64,000 nucleotides of DNA, from NCBI GenBank assembly GCA_002269645.1, contig NIVC01000040.1, positions 434,001-498,000 of the forward strand, in the 5' to 3' direction. Position 1 is the stretch's first letter; every line of letters starts with the position of its first letter. The notes under the pieces are model-generated. The model had not been told where the DNA came from. It searched no databases and saw nothing but the letters and a program-made list of their open reading frames with translations. The translations under genes and the position numbers were made by a program. Shown here one piece after another: positions 31 through 64,000 of this stretch. This DNA is from Macrostomum lignano (Eukaryota).

Positions 31-44274
<44,244 letters not shown>

Positions 44275-44828
44275 ATTGAAAATTTGGCGGATTACTCCTT
44301 AACACTATAAAGATCAATCTAGTTGAGTAAAGCGAAAAAAACAGCTAGCTAACATCTACGCGATAACGGGGAATCGACACTGCTCTTATATCCGCTCAGT
44401 GAAATACAATCTGACTTGATAACAGAGCTAATTTATTCGCGCGTCTGATAGGAATCTACTTTAGATAAATTCTAATTGACAAAGATCTCTTACTAAGCAA
44501 GGTGCAATGCAGCTTAATACAGCTCTCTAGAGTAGTTTTGCTCACTATATACTTGCACACGTACGGAGAGGAAGAATGTCCTAATGCACTAACTCAAGTT
44601 AGCCTACCTATATACATACGTGTAAGCACCTCGACGTTAAACAGAGTGGAGTGGCAGTGAAGACGAGAGACACAGGAGAGCCAGAGGCATGATCGGGAGG
44701 AAAAAAGAGCTTATCTCTTTCTATCTCTACAGTGGATGGAGCTAATTAGATGGGGAGTAAACGCTGACCCTATGCGAGTGGGATCGAATGGGAAAGGGAA
44801 AGACGATTTTAAGGGGGGGGGGATAAAT

Positions 44829-44839
44829 CCCGCCCCAAT
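44829..44839 (-). promoter_or_regulatory. Possible GC-box and CCAAT promoter element upstream of the MLNEE exon
   Basis: Overlapping CCCGCCCC and CCAAT about 530 bp upstream of the 44304 acceptor; motif-only evidence. Confidence 0.2.
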
Positions 44840-44918
44840 CAGGAATCCTCGAACGATATTGTTGGGATTTCTATCCAGTTTTGTCGGCTTTTTGCATAAA
44901 GCTAGGCTATAGTCTATC

Positions 44919-44990
44919 CAGGGGTCCCCAACCTGCGGCCCGCGGGCCGCATGTGGCCCGCGAGCCCTTTTTTTTGGCCCGCGGCACCTT
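44919..44990 (+). mobile_element. Orphan terminus of hAT/Charlie-like DNA transposon
   Basis: CAGGGGTCCCCAACCTGCGGCCCGCGGGCCGCATGTGGCCCGC is the typical Charlie-type terminus with subterminal palindrome; no partner TIR seen. Confidence 0.6.
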
Positions 44991-45728
44991 CCAGTACTAG
45001 ACTCTAGACTGCTATAGTAGATTTTATAAAAAGTAATTTAATTACTGTCTGCAAACAGTATAGATTCAGTATCAGTATGGACAGTTAATGATATTCAAAG
45101 TTTGACTAAGATTAAAAGTACTTTTGGAACCCAGGGGCTTTGAAAGAACTGTGGAGCGATTTCTGACAGATAGAAGCGTTCACTGAAGGGTTAGGGGGTT
45201 GAGCAGTCAGTGCGCCTGAAGGATCGCGGGTTGAGCATTCAGTGCGCCTGAAGTATCAGGGAATTGAGCAGTAAGTGCACCTGAAGGATCAGGGAATTGA
45301 GCAGTCAGTGCACCAGAAGGATCAGGGGATTGAGCAGTCAGTGCACCTGAAGGATCAGGGAATTGAGCAGTCAGTGCACCTGAAGGATCAGGGAATTGAG
45401 CAGTCAGTGCACCTGAAGGATCAGGGAATTGAGCAGTCAGTGCACCTGAAGGATCAGGGAATTGAGCAGTCAGTGCACCTGAAGGATCAGGGCATTGAGC
45501 AGTCAGTGCACCTGAAGGATCAGGGCATTGAGCAGTCAGTGCACCTGAAGGATCAGGGAATTGAGCAGTCAGTGCACCTGAAGGATCAGGGGATTAGGCA
45601 GTCAGTGCACCTGAAGGATCAGGGGATTAAGCAGTCAGTGCACCTGAAGGATCAGGGGATTAGGCAGTCAGTGCACCTGAAGGATCAGGGAATTGAGCAG
45701 TCAGTGCAGCTGAAGGATCAGGGGATTA

Positions 45729-47046
45729 CGAGGGGTGATCAAAAAGTTCTGCAACCTTTTGTTATAGCTTTTAGTTATAGAATCAGCAAAAGCCAAAAAC
45801 TTACACATATGCGGCTATATCTGTTTGCTATATTTTTTGCATTTTTGGCTTCCAAATGTGCTCCATTAAAATTTCACAGCCATATATTTTCCATGTGTTT
45901 TCAGTAGCTGATGGAAACATCAAAAGACAGTGTTCGCTTCTATATCTTTTTGTGCATGCAACTTGGTTGCAAAGTGACAGAGATTCACACCATGTTTTGT
46001 GAATGTTTTAGCTGACTCTGCTCCATCATTTGACACAGTTGCCTGCTGGCTGCGCCATTTCTTGGAAGGCTGGGACAGCTTCAACGATGAACCAAGGTCT
46101 GGCCGACCCCGGACATCCGTGACCGAAGATGTCGTGGCCCATGCCGATGCAATAATTCATGAGGATTGGAGCTTTTTGCTAAGATTCATTGCCTATGAGC
46201 TTGGTGTCAGCTATGGAAGTGCTCATAACATCATGCATGAGCAACTAGGCCGCACAAAGACCTGCGCTCGGTGGGTACCCCATCTTCTCACTCCGGAGCA
46301 GCAAGCAGAGAGGGTGCGCATCTGTCGCTTGTGGCTGCAAATGTTTGAGCCCCACGGCCCACGACAACTGTCAGATGTCATCACAGGAGACAAATGTTGT
46401 ATCTCCTTCTTTACCATGAGGGATAAGCAGTCCAACATGGTCTGGCTGGCAGAAGATGAGCCAAGGCCTGAGGTGCTGAAGACCGGATTCCGCAGTCGGA
46501 AGCGGATGTTCACCATTTTTTTCAACTCTCAGGGTGTTGTATCGGTGAACATCCTTCCAGCGGGTGCCACAGTGACTGCCAGGTACTACACAGACACTGT
46601 TCTGCCAGGCGTGCTGCAGGAGCGGCAGGAACGTGCGCGAACCAAGCATGGACCTCGACTCCTGCTGCACCATGACAATGCGGCACCGCACAGAGCGGCC
46701 TCAACCATGGCGTACCTGGAGCAGCAGGGGGTCCAGCTGCTGCCCCATTCACCCTACTCTCTAGACCTAGCACCTTCCGACTTTTGGCTGTTCCCGAGGA
46801 TCAAATCCGTCATTTCTGGGAGGCCATTTTCACGCATGCAAGACTTTGCCCAAGCGGTAAATTCAGCTCTACAGGGTATACCAACTTTGGAGTACCATGA
46901 CTGCTTTCAGACATGGTGCACACGGATGCGACGGTGCATAGATAGTGGTGGAAACTACTTTAAGGGAATGTGACACTGATTAGACGCCTCGGCTGCTGTA
47001 GCACAGAGTTGTGAGGTCACTTGCAGAACTTTTTGATCACCCCTCG
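45729..47046 (+). mobile_element. Mariner (DD34D) transposon, 1318 bp, inserted in a 33-bp minisatellite
   Basis: Perfect 26-bp TIRs CGAGGGGTGATCAAAAAGTTCTGCAA, TA duplication on both sides. Confidence 0.97.
45911..46973 (+). CDS. Mariner transposase (about 353 aa if one frameshift near 46009 is corrected)
   Basis: WVPHLL, TGD, HHDNA and YSLDLAPSD motifs; 34 residues between second and third Asp. Confidence 0.9.
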
Positions 47047-47610
47047 TAGGCAGTCAGTGCAGCTGAAGGATCAGGGGATTGAGCAGTCAGTGCACCTGAA
47101 GGATCAAGGGATTAGGCTTTAAGTGCACCTGAAGGATCAGGGAATTGAGCAGTAAGTGCACCTGAAGGATCAGGGAATTGAGCAGTCAGTGCACCAGAAG
47201 GATCAGGGCATTGAGCAGTCAGTGCACCTGAAGGATCAGGGCATTGAGCAGTCAGTGCACCTGAAGGATCAGGGAATTGAGCAGTCAGTGCACCTGAAGG
47301 ATCAGGGCATTGAGCAGTCAGTGCGCCTGAAGGATCAGGGGATTGAGCAGTCAGTGCACCTGAAGGATCAGGGAATTGAGCAGTCAGTGCACCTGAAGGA
47401 TCAGGGGATTGAGCATTCAGTGCACCTGAAGGATCAGGGAATTGAGCAGTCAGTGCACCTGAAGGATCAGGGCATTGAGCAGTCAGTGCAGCTGAAGGAT
47501 CAGGGAATTGAGCAGTCAGTGCACCTGAAGGATCAGGGCATTAAGCAGCATAGATGAAGGATGTTTAGAATCTATAAACAAGAACACAATCGCCAAATAA
47601 GATAACTCAC

Positions 47611-47622
47611 CCCTTCAGGCAT
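47611..47622 (-). CDS. Possible alternative ankyrin start exon (MPEG) or 5'UTR exon
   Basis: ATG CCT GAA GGG|GTGAGT, phase 0; weak acceptor near 47661. Confidence 0.3.
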
Positions 47623-48919
47623 TTCCGGACTTGGATTTTTAAAACATATAACCAGCCAAGCTAACTAATCTGACTAAAGAAAGGTCAAGCGGGCAATAAA
47701 ACTGTTTAGCAAGGCCAAATGTTTTCTATTCACTTAGTTTCTCACCGACAAGAGCTAAAAATAAATTTAATTCGAAAATTAACCTGCAACTTACAAGATC
47801 TATAATTCCTAAAGTTACACTAACAGAGCTCGATTTCGTATTTTGGCTTGCTCTCAATTTCTCTCTCTCCCTCCTCTCCACCTCTCTTCCTCTCATTTAT
47901 TATTCAACGAAGCGCAGTTCAAGTCAAGTCAGTGTGTCGCGCAGAGCATACAATTATAGCTGATTTGAGAGCGAGAGCTTAGTTGCGAATTGTGTGCGCC
48001 TGTGCATGGAAGTCATTGCTGAGAGTTTAGTAACAGGCGCAGAGAAAAACACGATATATAAATGTATGTAGGTATATGTATAAACCCCTATGTCATGCTA
48101 TTATTCAAGACCAGATAGTTAATAACAACTAAGACAGAGTACCATTTTGAGCTCTAACTCTTCGCTCAAAAGCCACCGTATTAACTATTAATCATTTTAT
48201 AGTCTAAATACAATACAGGCTTTACAGCTAGAAAAACAATAATCTAATTAATAACATTAGAAATACGAGCTAAAAACATAAAACGCTAAACATGCCTACT
48301 ATAAGTAGCTAGTTCAGACGAAAAAATGGCACAACCCAGAAAAATGACACCGAGTTAATTTAGCCTACCTAGGACAAGTTTTTTAACGTCTCAATCAGTA
48401 AAGCTTCTTTTTTTAAAGAGAAGAGACAAGAAACACAGGGAAAAACTTGAGCGATTTTGAGACTAAATTCTAGCCACAGGAACGCAACACATACTAATAC
48501 GTGCATATGCGATAAGAATGAAAACCCGACAGTTTAAATAGATAGATAAAAATGACCAGAAATCTTGGCTCCTATACAGTCGTAAAAAAGGCAGTATACT
48601 AAACAACTAGCGAGCCCCATTAATGAAAGACTGAAGGCCCAATCTTGAGTTTCTTGCTATCCAAATCGCATCTGCATTATGGGAGAGATTGAGCAAATAA
48701 TCTGAGTAATTTAAACACACAGTCAGCTAGATTTCATATAACGGAGGACCAATTTTCAAATTTACAAATAAAATGAGGCCACACACAACGTTATACATCT
48801 AGAGTAAGGAACTCCGCAACATTGGGTATACTGCTCTACTTTAATGGGAGAGCCTTCCAGAGAAGGTCTTGAGGGTCTCATTGAAAATGAAGGAGACATA
48901 TTTTGTGGAAAAAATCTAG

Positions 48920-49335
48920 TATTTGGCGCTTAATTGGCGCTAAAAATTTCGTCTATGGCGCCTAATTAGCGAAAAAAAATCACATCTGCGGCGCTAAATT
49001 CGCGCTAAAAATCTCGTTTGTGGCGCTTAATTAGTATTAAAACGCCTTCTGTGGCGCTTAATTAGCGCTAAAACCCCCTCTGTGGCGCTTAATTGGCGCT
49101 AAAACACCCTCTGTGGCGCTAACAATCCTCTGTGGCGCTTAATTGGCGCTAAAAACCCCTCTGTGGCGCTTAATTAGCGCTAAACCCCCCTCTGTGGCGT
49201 TTAATTAGCGCTAAACCCCCCTCTGTGGCGCTTAATTAGCGCTAAAAACCCCCTCTGTGGCGCTTAATTGGCGCTAAAACACCCTCTGTGGCGCTAACAA
49301 TCCTCTGTGGCGCTTAATTGGCGCTAAAAACCCCT
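48920..49335. repeat. About 31-bp minisatellite CTCTGTGGCGCTTAATTAGCGCTAAAACCCC
   Basis: About 13 units. Confidence 0.92.
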
Positions 49336-49345
49336 CTATAAATCA

Positions 49346-49378
<33 letters not shown>

Positions 49379-50669
49379 TTTGAGCGACTATTCCATATCC
49401 ATACAGTCGCCAAGCCTGGTTTCTAATAATTATTCTTCTTAAGTGTAGCTGCGATCCTTAAATCTTCATCAAAAAAGATTTAATACGGCACGCAGAGCCA
49501 TAAAAATAGCCGGATACAAGGAGATCATAATTATAAAATCTGGAGTAGACCCTTTCATTTACAATGCTGAAGTTGATTATCAGGAGAAATTGAAGAAATT
49601 GCAGAAGGGCTACGACCACCATGGCGCAACGCCTTCGCCGACATTGTCCTATACAAACCAATTTCTAATCGTCAGACATGTACACTCTCAGTGCCCTGGG
49701 GGCAGGCCCTCATAGGTGACTCTGGGATTTTAGCATCCCTTAGTTGGGGTAGACCTACACCAAATTCTGTCTTAAGTTCTCCTCGGTTTCTCCTCGAAGG
49801 GGAAGCCTAAGTGTTGCTTTGAACTCCCCAAACAGACCGAGCCAATCAACCACCCCAATCTCATTTTAGTGCAGACTTGCGCGAACCTCTTTCGCCCAAG
49901 CCAACCCTCCCCCCCACCCATCGAATACCTTCCCACTCGTGCATTCCCAACCAACCCTCCAAACCATATACTATACTATGCCATGCCAGACGTCTTTTTT
50001 TGGAGCCAGCCAGTTGAAGAACGGACAGAGGAGAAGAGGGGAAGAGAGGGAGATGGGGATAGACAGACATAGAATGGTCTGGTCATGGCGATGGAGCGGA
50101 GAGAGGAAAGAGGATGCAAAGAGAGAGAGAGAGAAAATCGATACCTTATAGGGCATACATAGTAGACCCTTCATTCCAATCCGTTCAGACTTCAGACGCC
50201 AGCCACCTCCCCTCCCAAAACCCGCCACCCCTAAAAGCAGAAACCAAAGCCACTGGCTTCGCTATACATAATATTATTTTCTGCTTACTTTTATAAGAAT
50301 ATATTGCGCATATCTCTGCTATGCGTGGAAGTCACGAACGAAGCAGCAAATTGGAAAGAAAAAGAGAGGGAGGGCGACTGTAAAGCAGAAATTGTGCGCA
50401 AAAGTCAAAACATTGGGGCGCATATTCTGAAAAGAAAGCTTAGTAATAATATACTAAATATGCTGTCTGTACTGAATAGTTATAGGGTAAACTAAAAATG
50501 ATGAGACCCTAACAGACGAGAAAATCAAAACCATCCCAATGCAGACAAACATCTATTTTCTTTGAACAACAATTCATATTAATATTTACTGGCGCATCCC
50601 AAAAGCTCTATTTCAAACATCATGCAAATCACATGCATTATACCGTTAATCGCAAGTGATACTAAATAA

Positions 50670-53600
50670 CATAAACCATCAATAGAATCGCACATAAACC
50701 ATCAATAGAATCGCACATAAACCATCAATAGAATCGCACATAAACCATCAATAGAATCGCACATAAACCATCAATAGAATCGCACATAAACCATCAATAG
50801 AATCGCACATAAACCATCAATAGAATCGCACATAAACCATCAATAGAATCGCACATAAACCATCAATAGAATCGCACATAAACCATCAATAGAATCGCAC
50901 ATAAACCATCAATAGAATCGCACATAAACCATCAATAGAATCGCACATAAACCATCAATAGAATCGCACATAAACCATCAATAGAATCGCACATAAACCA
51001 TCAATAGAATCGCACATAAACCATCAATAGAATCGCACATAAACCATCCCTACAATTGCCCATAAACCATCCCTACAATTGCCCATAAACCATCCCTACA
51101 ATTGCCAATAAACCATCCCTACAATTGCCCATAAACCATCCCTACAATTGCCCATAAACCATCCCTACAATTGCCCATAAACCATCCCTACAATTGCCCA
51201 TAAACCATCAATAGAATCGCACATAAACCATCAATAGAATCGCACATAAACCATCAATAGAATCGCACATAAACCATCAATAGAATCGCACATAAACCAT
51301 CCCTACAATTGCCCATAAACCATCCCTACAATTGCCCATAAACCATCCCTACAATTGTCAATAAACCATCCCTACAATTGCCCATAAACCATCCCTACAA
51401 TTGCACATAAACCATCAATAGAATCGCACATAAAACATTCAATAGAATCGCACATAAACCATCAATAGAATCGCACATAAACCATCAATAGAATCGCACA
51501 TAAACCATCAATAGAATCGCACATAAACCATCAATAGAATCGCACATAAACCATCAATAGAATCGCACATAAACCATCAATAGAATCGCACATAAACCAT
51601 CAATAGAATCGCACATAAACCATCAATAGAATCGCACATAAACCATCAATAGAATCGCACATAAACCATCAATAGAATCGCACATAAACCATCAATAGAA
51701 TCGCACATAAACCATCCCTACAATTGCCCATAAACCATCCCTACAATTGCCCATAAACCATCCCTACAATTGCCAATAAACCATCCCTACAATTGCCCAT
51801 AAACCATCCCTACAATTGCCCATAAACCATCCCTACAATTGCCCATAAACCATCAATAGAATCGCACATAAACCATCAATAGAATCGCACATAAACCATC
51901 AATAGAATCGCACATAAACCATCAATAGAATCGCACATAAACCATCCCTACAATTGCCCATAAACCATCCCTACAATTGCCCATAAACCATCCCTACAAT
52001 TGCCAATAAACCATCCCTACAATTGCCCATAAACCATCCCTACAATTGCACATAAACCATCAATAGAATCGCACATAAACCATCAATAGAATCGCACATA
52101 AACCATCAATAGAATCGCACATAAACCATCAATAGAATCGCACATAAACTATCAATAGAATTGCACATAAACCATCAATAGAATCGCACATAAACCATCA
52201 ATAGAATCGCACATAAACTATCAATAGAATTGCACATAAACCATCAATAGAATCGCACATAAACCATCAATAGAATCGCACATAAACTATCAATAGAATT
52301 GCACATAAACCATCAATAGAATTGCACATAAACCATCAATAGAATCGCACATAAACCATCAATAGAATCGCACATAAACTATCAATAGAATCGCACATAA
52401 ACTATCAATAGAATTGCACATAAACCATCAATAGAATTGCACATAAACCATCAATAGAATCGCACATAAACCATCAATAGAATCGCACATAAACCATCAA
52501 TAGAATCGCACATAAACCATCCCTACAATTGCCCATAAACCATCCCTACAATTGCCCATAAACCATCCCTACAATTGCCAATAAACCATCCCTACAATTG
52601 CCCATAAACCATCCCTACAATTGCACATAAACCATCAATAGAATTGCACATAAACCATCAATAGAATCGCACATAAACCATCAATAGAATCGCACATAAA
52701 CCATCAATAGAATCGCACATAAACCATCAATAGAATCGCACATAAACCATCAATAGAATCGCACATAAAACATTCAATAGAATCGCACATAAACCATCAA
52801 TAGAATCGCACATAAACCATCAATAGAATCGCACATAAACCATCAATAGAATCGCACATAAAACATTCAATAGAATCGCACATAAAACATTCAATAGAAT
52901 CGCACATAAAACATTCAATAGAATCGCACATAAACCATCAATAGAATCGCACATAAAACATTCAATAGAATCGCACATAAACCATCAATAGAATCGCACA
53001 TAAACCATCAATAGAATCGCACATAAACCATCAATAGAATCGCACATAAACCATCAATAGAATCGCACATAAACTATCAATAGAATCGCACATAAACTAT
53101 CAATAGAATTGCACATAAACCATCAATAGAATTGCACATAAACCATCAATAGAATCGCACATAAACCATCAATAGAATCGCACATAAACCATCAATAGAA
53201 TCGCACATAAACCATCCCTACAATTGCCCATAAACCATCCCTACAATTGCCCATAAACCATCCCTACAATTGCCAATAAACCATCCCTACAATTGCCCAT
53301 AAACCATCCCTACAATTGCACATAAACCATCAATAGAATTGCACATAAACCATCAATAGAATCGCACATAAACCATCAATAGAATCGCACATAAACTATC
53401 AATAGAATTGCACATAAACCATCAATAGAATCGCACATAAACCATCAATAGAATCGCACATAAACCATCAATAGAATCGCACATAAACCATCAATAGAAT
53501 CGCACATAAAACATTCAATAGAATCGCACATAAACCATCAATAGAATCGCACATAAACCATCAATAGAATCGCACATAAACCATCAATAGAATCGCACAT

Positions 53601-54185
53601 AAAACATTCAATAGAATCGCACATAAAACATTCAATAGAATCGCACATAAAACATTCAATAGAATCGCACATAAACCATCAATAGAATCGCACATAAAAC
53701 ATTCAATAGAATCGCACATAAACCATCAATAGAATCGCACATAAACCATCAATAGAATCGCACATAAACCATCAATAGAATCGCACATAAACCATCAATA
53801 GAATCGCACATAAAACATTCAATAGAATCGCACATAAAACATTCAATAGAATCGCACATAAACCATCAATAGAATCGCACATAAACCATCAATAGAATCG
53901 CACATAAACCATCAATAGAATCGCACATAAAACATTCAATAGAATCGCACATAAACCATCAATAGAATCGCACATAAACCATCAACAGAATCGCCCATAA
54001 ACCATCCCTAGAATTGCCCATAAGCCATCAACAGAATCGCCCATAAACCATCCCTAGAATTGCCCATAAGCCATCAACAGAATCGCCCATAAACCATCCC
54101 TAGAATTGCCCTTAAGCCATCAACAGAATCGCCCATAAACCATCCCTAGAATTGCCATAAGCCACCCCAAGAATCGCCCATAAAC
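50670..54185. repeat. 3.5-kb 23-bp two-monomer minisatellite
   Basis: Monomer A ATAAACCATCAATAGAATCGCAC and monomer B ATAAACCATCCCTACAATTGCCC in alternating blocks. Confidence 0.97.
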
Positions 54186-55871
54186 CATTAATAGAATAGC
54201 CCAAAAACGACCAAAACAATCGCCTATAAACAATCCTTAGAACAAAAAATATTGAAAAAATCAGACAATACTTGATACTCAAAGTGGAAATTGTCATCAT
54301 GTCAACTAAATCTTATGTTACAAGGTAATAAAGCTTTTGCATAGCTTTAAGTCAAAAGTCAAAGAATCAATATTAAGCCTGATTTTACATTTTAGTTTAT
54401 TAACAAACTATTTGTCATTAGGTATATAACTCAGTCCTTACTTAATATATAATCTTTTTATAAGACTTTTGTAGCAAATGTACAATACATACATTCAAAC
54501 TTTACTTCAAATTAGTTTATTTCGTTTACCAGTATATATATATACTAATTTCCAAAACTGAAGATTTTAAGCTTTTTTAACTTATTCTGAAAGCCTAATG
54601 ATTTACTAGGCTGTTTCTATTGACAAAATACCCACAGTTTGAAAGGCAACATGTATGCCAAGATTTCCTACCATACAAATACTTGCTATTTTTAGCATAC
54701 ATCAAAGTATATCCTAGCATACATGATAGAGTGGAAAATTTTTAGCTTAAATTAAAGTGACTTTACATAAGATACACTATATACAATACAATCAAAACCA
54801 AACAACTAGAATAAAAAATAATCTGAAAATTAGCACCTTAAAAAATTATTTTACAAAAATTTTAAACAAAATAAAAGTATTCAAAGTATTTCTTTTATAA
54901 TTGTCATCTATTAGTGAGCATTGCAAATATGCATAATCATAAAGTTTGTAATTGCATAAATTATGAATTCATTTCAAACAGAGCAAAACAAAAAGTTTTT
55001 AGTCTTGGCATAAAACAAGGTCCTATACTTTTTCTTCTACTAGACTTGGCATTCACTAATACACAATTTGAACTATGGCAAGTTGGAAATACACATATCA
55101 TAAAATAATAGTCATAAGATTGCTCTTAGCCAATAGCAACTTATATTTATATGTTGCTAATAGAAATGGCTAGTTCATTCCCAAGGTTGTGCATATATAC
55201 CTAAATAGTATGAGATATTTTCTACAAGATGTTTTGGTAACAGATTACAAAAGAGAGCTCTTAACTTTTTATAGCCTAGGCATATAGAATTGCTTTGCAT
55301 TTATAGAATTGAACCTGAATTTAAATTCTATTCTTGAACTTAAATTTAAGATTTTTTAAATTGATCATATAAACATACCTTACACTCCAGATCATGTATT
55401 ATACACCCAAATTTTTGGGCATAGATTGGCCTTGCATACCAAAAGCAGGCATGCACAGTTGGCGTGCATCATTCCCAAGAAAATAATGTGCATGCACACC
55501 TGGAGTGCACTTAGAATATAGATGTGATATAGAATCATGCATAAATTTTAAGCTTTCTAGGTTTTTTAAGCTTGTAATAAAAAGTTTAAACAAATCTTTG
55601 TATGTATCAATTTTCCACTATAAATATCATTGCCAAAAATGCATAAAAATCAACCAAATTATTTGTCAAAAGGGGTCTATTATGCAACTCAAAAAAGACA
55701 TTTATTGTCGCAACACTGGCATAGTTTTAAGAATGGGCATGCACTCAATTCTTTTTTGTTGTGCATTTATAATTATTGAATTTTTGTTTGAGCGTGCACC
55801 TAGCATGATCTGGACTATGGCATATACCTAATGACAAACCATTTTAGTATTTAGAATACTTCTTCAATATA

Positions 55872-56832
55872 CAAGGGTCATCCCAAAAGTTTCAGCAAAT
55901 GCCTATTAATTTTCAACAAACGAGTGTCAGTACAATGAACATGTCAAAAACCTTCAGAATAACTTTTGTTGACTTGAATTGTGCACTCCCAGCAGCCAGG
56001 CAACTTCTGAATGCTGTCAGCAGCGCCAGATTTGCACAGGTCTTTTGCAATGCAGCCGACCTCGCTGAACAGGTCATCAGGGCAATGGAAACGATGCCCT
56101 TGGAGCTGGTTCTTAAGCTTCGGAAAAAGGTCGAAATCACAGGGACTGAGGTCTGGGGAGTAAGGAGGATGAGGCAGCACCTCCCACTGGTAGTCCCGCA
56201 GTAGGTCCTGCACAATGCAGGCTGTGGCGAACTGGCATTGTCGTGCAGAAGGAGTGGACCAAGTTCCAGGGTCTGTGGCCACTTTTTGCACAAGGCAGGC
56301 CGAAGATGGTAAATAATGAAGCTCAACGAGGGGATTCCGGACAGCTCAGCCATTTCTTCGCATGTCTAATGACGATCGATGTTCAGCAGCCCTTGGATCA
56401 ACTAGATGTTCGACTCTGTGCGAGCTTCTTTTGGCCTTCCTCGTCCTTGACATCATCCTTGACATCAGAGCGGCCATTCTTGAATCGACTGTACCAGTTG
56501 TACATGGCTCGCTGGCTCATCGCATTTGGCCCATGGGCCTGCAGCAACTGACGGTGAATTTGAGCTGCAGGGACACCACGAAGACATTCCGTTTTAATGT
56601 TTGAGCGCTGCTCCAAATTCAACGGAAATTCCATTTTATTGTTGTCGGCCAATGTTAGATTTAGTATCTCACAAAATGTTCTTTAGAAAACAGAATTTTG
56701 AAGCTAAAATGCTAAAAACTTACTCAGACACCCAAAATATGCTTATCTTTCGTGTGGTATAAGTGCTATAGTCCTAAAAGTTGTCTATGGCACAAAATCA
56801 TTCGATTGCTGAAACTTTTGGGATGACCCTCA
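55872..56832 (-). mobile_element. Internally deleted mariner, 961 bp, non-autonomous
   Basis: 27-bp TIRs (CAAGGGTCATCCCAAAAGTTTCAGCAA, mismatched at two terminal bases), TA flanks; N-terminal HTH fragment (56398-56652) and C-terminal LLLHDNA / PYSPDLSPCDF fragments; WVPHEL region and first Asp missing. Confidence 0.93.
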
Positions 56833-58489
56833 TACATGTATAGATACAAATACTAGCCTATAATATATATAATGCATGTACATTTATTATATTAACTTTA
56901 AGATAGGTTTATTCTACTCAGTGAACATTGCATATATTTGTGAATATATTGTGAATATTTGTGTATATTTCATTCAAGTTCATTTAGTTGAATTATTGAG
57001 AAATTATATGGTCTTAACAAAGTCATATCTTTCCTAATTAAAAAATTATGTACAATATAATTTTATACCTAGACACCTAGCATGCCATAGTTTAGATTGT
57101 GTATTAGTTTATACAGGTTTAATACCATAAAAATGATGAGACCTTGTTGTACACCTGGTTGGTATGCCAATACAAAAAATTGACATTTGTCATAATATAT
57201 CTGCTGTATCATGTATGCCAGGATATACCTTGATATATGCTGAAAAATGGTAAGACTCTTGTTGTACACCAGGAAATCCTAACATATATGTTGCTTTCCA
57301 AACTATGGCTAGTATATACAGGCCCTTATAACTTATGATAGACTGAATATAGATTTTACAAGTTTCTAAAACCTAATCCGAATGAACACAAAAATTTCAA
57401 ATCTAAATCTAAACATTCAAATGTGTTTTTTAATGTAGACAAAAAGTGAAAGGTAAATGGCAGGAGTAACTATGACAAAAACTATGAAAAGTGACAAAAA
57501 AGCCTCATCATCTGATTAGTAATCACATTGTGCTATACCTTAATTTATTGACAAGATTTAATCTATCTTGGGCTTATACTATATCTATCTAGTATAAATT
57601 GAATTGAGCTTAGAATTGAACTCAATTCCTATATATCTAATCTAAACTGATTCTAATTATTGACATTACATTTGTGCATTTTGATAGCTTTACTATGTAC
57701 AGTGAATGTACATAGTCTGTTGCATTTGTATTTTGAAAAAAAACCAAGTGAGGATTATACTGATACACTAATACTAATAAACAATGATACCTAAAAATGT
57801 TTTTGCAACTTTAGGTTAAATACCTCAAAGGTCCCAAAAAAGACTTTTTAAAAATATGTTTTTGAAAAAACAGACAATTGCAAAAACAAACAATACAATA
57901 TTAAATTTTACGTTTTTTTAATTTACTTTCTCTTCAAAAGCTTTTTCTTTTATTTTTAGCATAAATTTGCTTTGATTTTTTTTATTTTTTTCATATTTGA
58001 AAACACACTCAGAAATTTGGAAAAATTTCCAAATCCAAAACATTCAAATTTCTAAAAAAATGAGACTTTCGGAGTCCAAATCCAAATATTTTGATCTATC
58101 ACTAGCCCCCCCCCCCTTACTTATAACATAATTAAGCAAGCTTTCTCGCATTTGAATTCTTAAAGCTTTTAAAGATTTCTGAAATTTTCAGTTTTAACAG
58201 ACAAACCTTCTGGCACCTATGGCTGCATAGTAAAAAACTTTAAATTAAAAATTTTACTTGACAAAATATGTACTTTAGAGAATGTCTTACATTAGATCAT
58301 AGGTTATGGGTACTAGCTTGACTTGAACCAAATGTCTTATTAAACGAAATATCTTTTGAGGGTGAGGTGGCTCGTACAAAAATCTTAGCTTGAAGTATGA
58401 AAGACGCACCCCATAAAACATTGACACAGAATAGAGGAGTATAGTGCAGTATTTTAAGCAAATATTGACAGTTAGGCCTACATACTTAC

Positions 58490-58537
58490 CGGTTGATTAG
58501 AATCCTCAGCATGACCTTTTTCCTCAGTTAATGTCAT
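58490..58537 (-). CDS. Candidate distal alternative first coding exon of ankyrin (MTLTEEKGHAEDSNQP)
   Basis: Strong pyrimidine tract and tandem acceptors (58623-58630), in-frame TAA TAG before ATG, donor CCG|GTAAGT phase 0; peptide resembles MLNEEDKG. Confidence 0.45.
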
Positions 58538-59753: not shown

Positions 59754-61759
59754 AGCAACCCTGATCAGTTTTTTTCATATCTTTTAATTCAGAATAGTCC
59801 AAGAGAAATATTGCTCACTGGCGCATAAGAGTGGCGACTAATGGTTCTGACTATGGATTTTCAGGCAGGAAATGGTCGCTCATTCCTGCCGTCAAATCCA
59901 TAGTCAGAACTATGTTGTCCCATCATTTCGAGGGCGCCACTAAGCATTAACCATAGACGAAACTAGCGGGCACAAAATTCATTCCTGCCCGCGTTCAAAT
60001 CTTTTCTGCCCGCCACTTTAGTCTGTGGTAATACTCAGGCTTTTTAAACTGTATTTTTGCAACAGCTGATAGAATCCTGAAGAAAAGAGCGAATATATAT
60101 ATATGGAAGTCAACAAGCACGACCACTAATTATTGAGCACGAGGCATGATCAATTTGCAAAGAATCGCCACTGGCGATATTAGTGGCTTGGATAGTGCTG
60201 AATTGGAATTCATGTCCAAACTGCGTCCATGAGCGCGAAGACGTCTGTCGATCAGTGGTCGGGATTGCCAATCCTGGACCTCAATGACGTGGAAACGTTT
60301 TTGGCGGAACTACGGACTCAGGAAGATTCGTATCGCGACTTAGATGTACAAGAACTAGAGGACATCAAACGACTTGAACAGTCGTCAAAGTCGGCATTCA
60401 CCTTAGCAACCACTAAGAATCAAATTAATCGGTTCAAGAAATTTCTTCGAGAGAAAAACCTGCCTGATGACATTGAAAGCTACGTACTTAGACGGCTATC
60501 TGCGCCTCTGGTACGTAAGTCTGCGAGCTAATCCTGCGCTTGGAACGAAGACCTATGCACCGGATACGATTCGAGGCTTTCGGGCTAGTATCCATCGATT
60601 TGTAAAGGAGGCAAACAGAGCTTGAGAAAGACGGTGTAAGACTCAGCTTCTATCTTTAACGCTGCATGGCTTTTGATGAAGCATTGATGAACTATTCTGC
60701 TATTGACGTATTGTTTATAAATGTACTTTTGTTATGCTGGCTAGCATGTACTGTTACTTCGATAAATTTATCTTTTTCTACGCTTAATAATAAATGCCAT
60801 AGACTAAAATCGCGGGCACACATTGACGATTCCGTGGGCCGTGCGGCCCGCAAAATCATGGGACAACTTTTCAATGTTGCTGAGTATAGTGTTGCTTCCT
60901 TTTTCTGTTGTTTATGGTCGTGCGGCTCGGATCTCTCTGGGGCTGCTGATTTTAGAATTTTAAAAGCGTGCTGTTGTACTGTGAGGCAGCGCCAAATGAA
61001 CTAAGATGCGAGAAGCAATTGCAGGGTAGAAAAGTCACAAAGGCTTGGAAGGCCGGTGCGCACTTATATTATAGTTAAACTATACTAACCATGCAGCATG
61101 ATTTAGCAAACACCAAACCCCCCACCCGGCCTAGGCCGGTCTGGGCAGACAGACAAACCCCCCAGCCAATCAGAATGCAAGACTCTAGGCGGCGTGCAAA
61201 ATTAAGCCGTATGCACAACACGTGCCATGTGCTCGTAGGCGCTTTTGTTTTCATATATATTCCCGTCAAGGATGCAGTACCAATTACATGTGTAGATACT
61301 GCAACTGAGTGAGTGCATCGATCGATTTCGCCAGGGGTTAGCGAAATGGGCGGCAACGCCTCCTCGCTGTTTCCGGACGCACGGAGCCCCCTGCAGCTAA
61401 GTCAAGTAAGTCAAGAGTGCATCGATCGGTTTTATTTTTTTTTTAATTTCTCGATGTCGCACTTTAAAATACATGTATCTCATTAACGTTCATTTGTATT
61501 AGCGTTGCTGATTGTTACGTAAGCATTTCACATGCATACATGTATGAATATCTAATGAGGTTCATAGTTTAATCGAGCTCATGTATATGTCCAATATGTT
61601 GTATACAAGAACCACTGCAAGTTGTATATATATTCAATACTTACAGTGGTCCCTAGAAGGTTTATCATCAAAGCATGTTTATATTCGGTTGTAACGATCA
61701 AGGTCATTGCACATGCACACGTAATACAGAAAAAAAAATTCATCAATATCAGAGTTCCT
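59754..61759. mobile_element. Candidate Kolobok-like non-autonomous element, 2006 bp
   Basis: TTAA on both flanks; termini AG...CT; 12-bp imperfect TIR AGCAACCCTGAT versus AGGAACTCTGAT. Confidence 0.4.
60229..60625 (+). pseudogene. Crypton/DUF3504-type tyrosine recombinase N-terminal remnant
   Basis: KSAFTLATTKNQINRFKKFLREKNLPDDIES, then after a frameshift at about 60485 YLDGYLRLWYVSLR...TYAPDTIRGFRASIHRF, matching the Crypton core-binding pattern as I recall it; catalytic domain absent. Confidence 0.65.
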
Positions 61760-61888
61760 TTAAATTCGTATTAAACAGTATCATTTTGGCGTCTTATATA
61801 GTTTTGCGTAGATAGCATAGTGCATTATACATATCGATCACATTTCCAGATGCTATTCGAGTCCTACTAGATATAAGCGAACCAATCT

Positions 61889-62125
61889 TCACAATCCTGC
61901 CAACAGACTCGCTTTCGTAATGCAGGTGTCCTTTTTATGACTGCAGCTTGTGCAACAAATCGAACTGTCTTTACTACAACAGGGCGATTTCAATGAGCAG
62001 TGCTCACCGATGCCGGCACAGTAGGCAACGTAGCGCTTGCTGACTCTGTTCATTATCAAGCTCATGCAGGCACAGGACGACTCGAGTAACAACAGAATGC
62101 AGATGGTTTGGTACAAATTCAACAT
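61889..62125 (-). CDS. Secreted cysteine-rich knottin/toxin-like prepropeptide, 78 aa
   Basis: True ATG with A at -3; hydrophobic N-terminus (TICILLLL), short pro-segment ending in KR, then 47 aa with C-x6-C-x5-CC-x6-CC-x2-C-x6-C. Confidence 0.7.
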   Translation of the reverse strand: MLNLYQTICILLLLESSCACMSLIMNRVSKRYVAYCAGIGEHCSLKSPCCSKDSSICCTSCSHKKDTCITKASLLAGL

Positions 62126-62749: not shown

Positions 62750-64000
62750 TTTTACTTGATTAGGTGCAGACTCTGTAGGTCCCCATGTCTGCCGGAGGGG
62801 CACGGAACCGCGGCACGAGATTGCTGACAGTTCTGGGTGCCCGCCCAACTGTCCCTGCGAAGGGAATCAGCCCAGTCATCGATCTGACGATTGACGACCG
62901 CAGAAGGGATAGGGACCAGAGGAACAGGGCCAGAGAAAGAGCCAGAGACGCCCCTCTTGGCGTGGGTGTCTGCCAGCTGGTGCCCCAGAAACCCTGCGTG
63001 CCCTGGGATCCACTTCAGCCTGACAGTATTGCTACTGGCCATGCAGGAGGTTGAGCTGCCGGGCGCAGTCGGCGATTGTCCGGGAGTTCGTGGTGGTGTG
63101 GCAAAGGGCCTGTAAGGCCGCTTGGCTGTCAGAATGGAAGACGACGTCCCTCCTCTCGTACCCTTGGCATTCAGTTCTGCGGCGCGGGAGATGATAGCAA
63201 GGACTTCGTTCTGGAAGACCATATGGAGAGTCTGCCAGTGTGCTTGGCATGCGTGATAATGAAGTGGCCGTTATTTATGATGCAGACCCAAACGCCAGCG
63301 TGGCCGTCTTTGATGGATCCGTCCGTGTAGCAATCCATTCCGTCCCCGAGGGTATCAGGGGACGGACCAGATGCCACCGTAGCTCTGCGAATGGGGTCAG
63401 GCCGAGAATCATCGATAACCATATTCCAGAGAACTGGAGACAGAACCCCACCTTTCGGGCTACCTTTGCAGACGGGGACTGTCCTCTGGTAGCCCAGCCA
63501 GACTGGCGGTGGCCGAGCGATGGCTGATCACGTACATGATCCACCTGGTGAGATGTGAGTGCGATCGCCTCCCACAGAGAGCTCTTCGGAACGCCTCCAG
63601 GAAGTCCAGGAAGATCCCCAGAGCAAAGCCGTTTCAAACACGGCCTTCTCTAGTTTATCAACCAGGACGGGCAGCGCGCTTTCAGTGGAGCGACCCGCCC
63701 GAAAAGCGTGCTGGTTCTCGCTGAGGGGTTTGTTATTCAGCTCAACAGTGAGAGGCGCCAAAGCACCAGTCTCTCCATCAGCTTGACCAGGGAGGAGGTC
63801 AAGCTGATCGGTCTGAAGGATTTGATAGAATGGTAGTCCGGGCGGCCTGGCTTAGGGATGAAAATCACCTTTGCCTCGGTCCATGCCTGTGGGACATAAC
63901 CAAGCGTGATGCATGCCCGAAAAAGGCTGCAAAGTTTACGCAGGAAGCCTGGGCATTTAACCGCCTCTCTTAGGAGGGCCGGTACAATACCGTCGGGTCC
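62750..64000 (-). mobile_element. Decayed non-LTR retrotransposon with RT and RNase H (I group, Loa/R1-like), cut by window edge
   Basis: GPDGI, AKVIFIPKPG, FRPISLTS, QHAFRAGRSTESAL, LGIFLDF, GGVLSPVLWN; RNase H YTDGS, SDSQAALQAL, WIPGH; many frameshifts; YADD missing. Confidence 0.9.

Follow-up and report, generated by a model that had tools for sequence, protein, structure and literature searches.

An unannotated open reading frame of Macrostomum lignano that may encode a small secreted cysteine-rich peptide

INTRODUCTION

The cysteine order C-C-CC-CC-C-C is that of framework XI in the I-superfamily conotoxins (for example iota-RXIA), which start with the spacing C-x6-C-x5-CC, and it is also that of the Janus-faced atracotoxins of spider venom such as kappa-hexatoxin-Hv1c, where eight cysteines make up an inhibitor cystine knot (ICK) core with an extra vicinal disulfide. 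The agatoxin-like pattern (omega-agatoxin IV and the arthropod ALP) reads C-x6-C-x6-CC-x4-C-x-C-x6-C-x-C. Granulins, which are secreted and present in flatworms, consist of 12-cysteine modules with four CC pairs that start C-x5-6-C-x5-CC-x(6-8)-CC. No ICK peptide from flatworms is described in the open-access literature that we searched, and literature queries on flatworm knottins, on cysteine-rich peptides and on the identifier of the ankyrin gene discussed below gave nothing relevant.

Macrostomum lignano is a free-living, diatom-grazing flatworm and is not venomous. Its genome is reported to be highly repetitive and to have transcriptional units of several genes, which trans-splicing resolves. 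Here we describe a reading frame of 78 codons, ORF78, within a stretch of 64,000 nucleotides of this genome (the window), for which an earlier note had proposed a conotoxin-like cystine-knot prepropeptide gene upstream of an ankyrin gene. Taken as a whole, that interpretation is partly supported by the comparisons reported below.

RESULTS

An intact reading frame with a prepropeptide-like layout

ORF78 runs uninterrupted from ATG to TGA, just as the earlier note had read it. It lies on the minus strand, whereas the note gave no strand, and its product divides into three segments.

61889 to 62125, minus strand: ORF78, an ATG-to-TGA frame of 78 codons plus stop, the candidate single-exon prepropeptide gene
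62069 to 62125, minus strand: signal-peptide-like leader, residues 1-19, MLNLYQTICILLLLESSCA, recognised by its hydrophobic core and its -3/-1 residues
62033 to 62068, minus strand: putative pro-segment, residues 20-31, CMSLIMNRVSKR, read from the sequence, with presumed cleavage
61892 to 62032, minus strand: putative mature peptide, residues 32-78, 47 aa with eight cysteines

In record coordinates the frame occupies NIVC01000040.1:495889-496125 (complement) of the Macrostomum lignano assembly Mlig_3_7, with its ATG at window position 62125 and its TGA ending at 61889. The placement comes from an exact match of the 100-aa ORF at 60229-60531, which puts window position 1 at record position 434001 in GCA_002269645.1, the accession that papers give for Mlig_3_7. 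The 78-aa translation is MLNLYQTICILLLLESSCACMSLIMNRVSKRYVAYCAGIGEHCSLKSPCCSKDSSICCTSCSHKKDTCITKASLLAGL, which includes the peptide segment YVAYCAGIGEHC... Between the preceding in-frame stop and the ATG there is no in-frame ATG, GTG or TTG; an A stands at position -3 of the ATG, and the opposite strand holds ORFs of 31 and 36 aa only.

The prepropeptide-like arrangement that had been claimed (a hydrophobic leader with SCA/C, KR at residues 30-31 and a C-terminal domain of eight cysteines) is present in the translation. The leader core ICILLLL has a mean Kyte-Doolittle value of 3.81, and ESSCA/C after this core fits the -3/-1 rule, with the small residues S17 (-3) and A19 (-1). A strict heuristic for core and cleavage site was run on 208 non-repetitive ORFs with an ATG start from about 140 kb of the M. 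lignano genome, and the ORF78 leader was the only one to pass. The putative pro-segment terminates in the dibasic motif K30-R31 directly before the cysteine domain, and Val at P4 makes this motif a dibasic site and not a furin site. Past K30-R31, the remaining 47 residues hold exactly eight cysteines with the claimed spacing C-x6-C-x5-CC-x6-CC-x2-C-x6-C, a net charge of about +2 and a hydrophobic 10-residue tail (ITKASLLAGL). The complete product has 11 cysteines; C9, C18 and C20 lie in the leader and pro-segment, where C20 is the one unpaired cysteine of the putative pro-segment.

Likeness to toxin families and its limits

With the I-superfamily conotoxins ORF78 has in common the cysteine order C-C-CC-CC-C-C, the opening C-x6-C-x5-CC and a putative succession of signal, pro-segment, basic site and mature peptide, whereas its later loops (x6, x2 and x6) are different, its signal sequence, the part by which conotoxin superfamilies are defined, is unrelated to theirs, and it is a single ORF where conotoxin genes have introns. 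Membership of a conotoxin family fails on sequence (0 Pfam families at E<=10), on the signal sequence and on taxon, the host being a flatworm and not a conoidean snail. Of the earlier description as conotoxin-like, the framework XI cysteine order stands and a family kinship is not supported; framework XI names no more than an order of cysteines. A venom, which the earlier note had also raised, is unlikely in a diatom-grazing flatworm.

Both the cysteine order and the count of eight are those of the Janus-faced atracotoxins as well, a comparison that serves as a lead and not as a test. The atracotoxin loops (x6, x2, x1, x4 and x9) differ from those of ORF78, and no atracotoxin matched it in PDB or Pfam. 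The proposal of an agatoxin-like peptide did not hold: ORF78 has a second CC pair, is without the C-x-C motifs of that pattern and gave no sequence match to it.

Search for relatives and copies

No homologue of ORF78 was found by a word-indexed search of 5.8-billion proteins or by exhaustive phmmer against 1.84 billion representative proteins, and 0 Pfam-A families were matched at E<=10 whether the query was the whole precursor, its mature part or the cysteine core. Metagenome contigs and viral contigs contained no relatives, public assemblies list no identical product, a literature search on fragments of the peptide returned no match, and no Rfam family was found across the window. These negatives are the weaker because a 47-residue cysteine-rich domain reaches E<=0.001 in such databases only at high identity, and the protein collections searched hold little flatworm sequence, with GenBank proteins as their only M. 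lignano content. The 100-aa product of the neighbouring annotated gene (P0121) is carried by its single GenBank record only, so that the missing identical product is likewise a weak negative for ORF78. Query length also bears on these results. When a 206-aa part of the ankyrin protein was the query, every listed match was at most 361 aa long and at most 74% identical, and the 1984-aa protein of the window itself did not appear, whereas with a rebuilt ankyrin query of 1434 aa that protein was the top match; short queries seem not to recover proteins that are much longer.

The earlier note had looked to homologues and paralogues with conserved cysteines. Homologues that keep the spacing were found in none of the collections searched, poor in flatworm sequence as these are; the earlier note had itself named this among the outcomes that would speak against its reading, and we count it against ORF78. 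Nor did the roughly 140 kb of genome that we examined contain a paralogue or second copy, this being the window, the 6.5 kb beyond it (to window-equivalent position 70531) and a 68-kb paralogous ankyrin locus. The latter (L003), the locus of an older ankyrin paralogue (P0128), has no relative of ORF78 upstream and no repeats in common with the window by blastn. As the genome has a recent duplication behind it, a homeologous locus was also sought, but none was retrieved: the ankyrin protein of the window (P0122) and the 100-aa neighbour are each alone in their 90% cluster, and each is found on one contig.

Chance expectation, composition and signals around the frame

An orphan without homologue or paralogue in the searched collections may be non-functional, either a chance or recent frame or a decaying gene relic that yields no stable mRNA or translation, a reading that we regard as possible though rather unlikely. 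The rarity of the layout speaks against it. In the window the eight-cysteine pattern is found a single time, and none of 200 windows shuffled locally contained it. Cysteine-rich ORFs are by themselves not rare here: local shuffling produced 0.44 per window that were 78 aa or longer and carried 11 or more cysteines. In a simulation of 1.2e9 codons drawn as independent and identically distributed (iid), which real genomes are not, a deliberately loose eight-cysteine framework pattern turned up 2 times when GC was 0.42, equal to about 5 per 764-Mb genome, and never when GC was 0.47, and about 2-5 such patterns are expected per genome (analytic estimate about 4). None of the 561 chance cysteine patterns (559 with six cysteines and 2 with eight) was preceded by a Met and a hydrophobic leader together with a dibasic site, and by our own arithmetic the whole layout of Met, leader, KR and eight cysteines would be expected about 3e-4 times per genome (analytic estimate). 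Under the iid model this joint expectation lies far below one per genome, and a chance origin of the complete layout is unlikely even when the freedom to notice other patterns is allowed for; that many windows were scanned for anything striking is the multiple testing that speaks for a non-functional frame.

Repeats in the window produce cysteine-rich and long frames of their own. Two (AGAC)n/(GACA)n microsatellites at 39986-41313 and 17209-17658 (333 and 113 copies) give rise to cysteine-rich 'LSVC' pseudo-ORFs that inflate naive counts of cysteine-rich ORFs, and one of the two directly adjoins the second coding exon of ankyrin (about 41390-41490). Intronic minisatellites at 8832-11054 (28-bp unit, 80 copies) and 27888-29577 (21-bp unit, 80 copies) yield very long spurious ORFs on both strands, the longest of 939 aa.

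Base composition sets ORF78 apart from the DNA around it.

61850 to 62100, no strand: GC island (0.43-0.53) that coincides with ORF78, within a 1.1-kb stretch of GC 0.24-0.40

The frame has a GC content of 0.47 and a GC3 of 0.63, against 0.33-0.36 in the 500-nt flanks and 0.30-0.36 in the flanks as a whole. Among 152 non-repetitive ORFs that begin with ATG and span 60 aa or more, drawn from about 140 kb of the M. lignano genome, ORF78 comes eighth by GC3 minus flank GC; the seven that rank higher overlap ankyrin exons without exception, whether sense or antisense, which leaves it the top-ranked ORF outside known exons. The composition of ORF78 is exon-like, and a GC and GC3 island that matches the frame and ranks among true exons counts against a non-functional frame, as do the intact Met-to-stop frame and the even number of cysteines (eight) in the putative mature part. 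Codon choice is neutral, which favours that reading: the synonymous codon log-likelihood ratio of ORF78 is about 0 bits per codon, compared with 0.4-0.8 in ankyrin exons, -0.2 to -1.2 in most non-coding ORFs and about 0 in transposable-element ORFs. As it equals the score of transposable-element ORFs, codon-usage likelihood does not discriminate here.

The surroundings of the frame and two details of its product also favour a non-functional ORF. No canonical poly(A) signal lies within 300 nt of ORF78, and the sequence shows no TATA-like motif. Past the stop, a canonical AATAAA is first reached at 61431-61436, 453 nt away.

61568 to 61573, minus strand: ATTAAA nearest to the ORF78 stop on its 3' side, 316 nt past the stop

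Debris of transposable elements surrounds the frame in this highly repetitive genome, the leader and pro region contain an odd number of cysteines, and the n-region of the leader is uncharged, with 0 basic residues.

Genomic surroundings and annotation

ORF78 was claimed to lie upstream of ankyrin, and this placement is correct. The ankyrin gene BOX15_Mlig001678g5, annotated as a 'hypothetical protein' of 1984 aa, is on the same strand, its CDS starts at window position 58537, and ORF78 ends 3.35 kb upstream of this start codon.

58490 to 58537, minus strand: first coding exon of BOX15_Mlig001678g5, ATGACATTAACT..., MTLTEEKGHAEDSNQP, then a GTAAGT donor
60229 to 60531, plus strand: annotated 100-aa gene (GenBank annotation), which overlaps an ORF at 60467-60625
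62752 to 63868, minus strand: frameshifted remnant of a non-LTR retrotransposon (LINE), with the start of an RT domain, then RNase H

In the LINE remnant, which continues beyond the end of the window, the RT and RNase H parts are split over at least four frames; the RNase_H match (E=0.0015) is below the Pfam cut-off, and the RT motifs were identified by visual inspection. On the other side of ORF78, the segment 60229-60625 (plus strand) reads as what we take to be a frameshifted N-terminal domain of Crypton/KIAA1958 type, with the ORF at 60467-60625 in the +1 frame. These ORFs have no Pfam match, and the annotated 100-aa gene may be a transposon relic that was called as a gene. ORF78 lies between the decayed LINE and this suspected relic, apart from both in the 1.1-kb AT-rich stretch. 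Direct repeats of 28 nt and 22 nt flank the frame and were considered as transposon ends; they do not extend on alignment and were judged to be chance.

This arrangement bears on the reading that ORF78 is coding as part of something larger, namely a longer transcript (an ankyrin 5' exon or an upstream cistron) or the cargo or 3' sequence of a retrotransposon or repeat, which we hold to be improbable. Its position on the ankyrin strand 3.35 kb upstream, in an animal with trans-spliced multi-gene units, would suit a longer transcript, and so would a donor-like GTGAG inside the frame at the G38-E39 codons; against this, ORF78 is self-contained, running from the first in-frame start after a stop to its own stop. 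As for cargo, the last ORF of the same-strand LINE remnant ends upstream of ORF78, 627 nt before its ATG, but about 430 nt of AT-rich DNA (GC 0.24-0.40) part ORF78 from the end of the GC-rich sequence of the LINE. The single copy in about 140 kb, the lack of blastn repeats shared with the paralogous ankyrin locus and the short flanking repeats that go no further on alignment all argue against a repeat.

The second ankyrin coding exon is about 17 kb downstream of the first, and the first intron between them (41490-58490, minus strand, about 17 kb) is filled with satellites and transposons. Its arrays include a 23-bp unit at 50669-54242 (3.6 kb, 155 copies) and a 30-bp array at 43172-44155. A mariner-type transposase ORF at 45999-46973 (plus strand; Transposase_1, HTH_32) stands between arrays of one and the same 33-bp minisatellite at 45183-45727 and 47050-47548, and over 45183-47548 a single 33-bp array appears to have been split by insertion of the transposon. 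A second, frameshifted remnant of a Mos1-like mariner is found at 55916-56652 (minus strand), with HTH_48 at 56398-56652 and DDE-like ORFs at 55916-56353. Opposite in strand to ankyrin, and inside or close to the gene's 3' part, lies an 825-aa pol ORF (1645-4122, plus strand) with protease, RT, RNase H and integrase, which belongs to an LTR retrotransposon of Ty3/gypsy type.

ORF78 itself is absent from the GenBank annotation, which has no gene from window position 60531 to window-equivalent position 70531, in line with the earlier expectation that gene predictors would miss it. TransDecoder has a default minimum of 100 aa. The pipeline behind the annotation kept only transcripts that TransDecoder called coding and dropped the non-coding ones. 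Given this minimum and a neighbour of exactly 100 aa, a 78-aa ORF would have been dropped even if transcribed.

Fold evidence

For the full precursor, AF2 run without an alignment gave a pLDDT of 55, which is poor and uninformative; the mature 47-mer alone reached a moderate 70, with 78-80 over residues 11-30, and was modelled with three short strands at residues 18-20, 25-27 and 34-37. Foldseek matched this mature model to three PDB entries only, SHL-I (1qk7), omega-grammotoxin SIA (1koz) and asteropsin C (2lzy), all of which are knottins, at non-significant scores (E=9.7, probability <=0.04); the superpositions covered 27-32 columns, with TM 0.33-0.55 and rmsd 2.3-3.9 A. By sequence, phmmer against PDB likewise gave three matches only, none of them significant: 6px7 ('venom polypeptide'), AcaTx1 (6nk9) and Hd1a (2mpq), with E-values of 0.091, 1.6 and 1.7. 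The best of these, 6px7 (E=0.09), has C-x-x-IGEHC-x5-CCSK in common with ORF78. We take Hd1a and 6px7 to be ICK peptides; AcaTx1 is cited in papers on sea-anemone ICK peptides.

Together, the PDB sequence matches and the matches of the predicted fold show only that ORF78 is compatible with a knottin. The knottin claim of the earlier note stands in so far as the cysteine pattern opens with ICK spacing (C-x6-C-x5-CC, where at least six cysteines and C-x(3-7)-C-x(3-8)-CC in the first half are called for) and the sole weak matches in PDB and Foldseek are knottins; it does not extend to significant similarity with a known ICK family, of which phmmer against PDB and Pfam found none. Spider, sea-anemone and sponge ICK peptides are the best and only sequence and fold matches to ORF78, which differs from them in its second CC pair, its eight cysteines and its 10-residue hydrophobic tail, and in which knotting is putative.

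Granulin modules resemble ORF78 in their N-terminal spacing (C-x6-C-x5-CC-x6-CC in ORF78), and membership was rejected on its two CC pairs. That ORF78 encodes a real secreted peptide of another disulfide-rich fold, such as a truncated granulin-like beta-hairpin stack, is very improbable: its first six cysteines resemble the N-terminal half of granulin (C-x5-6-C-x5-CC-x8-CC) and the AF2 model is of moderate confidence only, but it has eight cysteines and not 12, no granulin match in Pfam (Granulin) or PDB even at E<=10, and Foldseek matches that are knottins and not granulins.

DISCUSSION

We give a probability of roughly 0.5 to the reading that ORF78 is a real, lineage-restricted, single-exon gene of M. 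lignano for a small cysteine-rich peptide that is secreted and may be a knottin. The intact frame, its motif layout, its exon-like composition and its lack of annotation are shown by the data, whereas expression, secretion, cleavage, fold and function of its product are inferred, as follows. Residues 1-19 would steer the precursor into the ER and be cut off after SCA, and a proprotein convertase specific for dibasic sites would then take off the short pro-segment at K30-R31. The leftover mildly basic peptide of 47 residues would fold around four disulfides, its first six cysteines being spaced as in inhibitor-cystine-knot peptides, while the second CC pair and the last cysteine could form an extra bridge as in the C-C-CC-CC-C-C toxins. 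Such a stable mini-protein might act outside the cell by binding a membrane target, for example on ion channels, receptors or the surface of microbes. As this worm feeds by grazing on diatoms, we lean towards a role in defensive, mucosal or reproductive secretion or in signalling over one as predatory venom. The absence of the gene from the annotation would be due to its length of less than 100 aa.

If ORF78 is not expressed, it is a striking orphan ORF of little consequence. If it is expressed, it would be an unannotated secreted mini-protein and a convergent case of the C-C-CC-CC-C-C order outside venomous animals, and transcript-based annotation, which apparently excludes ORFs of less than 100 aa, would systematically miss genes for small cysteine-rich peptides. 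A further step, which we consider speculative and on balance unlikely, is that ORF78 founds a family of eight-cysteine C-C-CC-CC-C-C peptides of knottin type that is specific to flatworms, arose independently of the toxins of cone snails and spiders, and is made here by a meiofaunal worm that has no venom. Should such a family exist, its possible roles would include epidermal or mucosal defence, seminal fluid and neuro-endocrine signalling, and the standard annotation of M. lignano would hide a class of genes of less than 100 aa. As M. lignano is a transgenic model for regeneration and reproduction, the candidate is directly testable in the animal itself.
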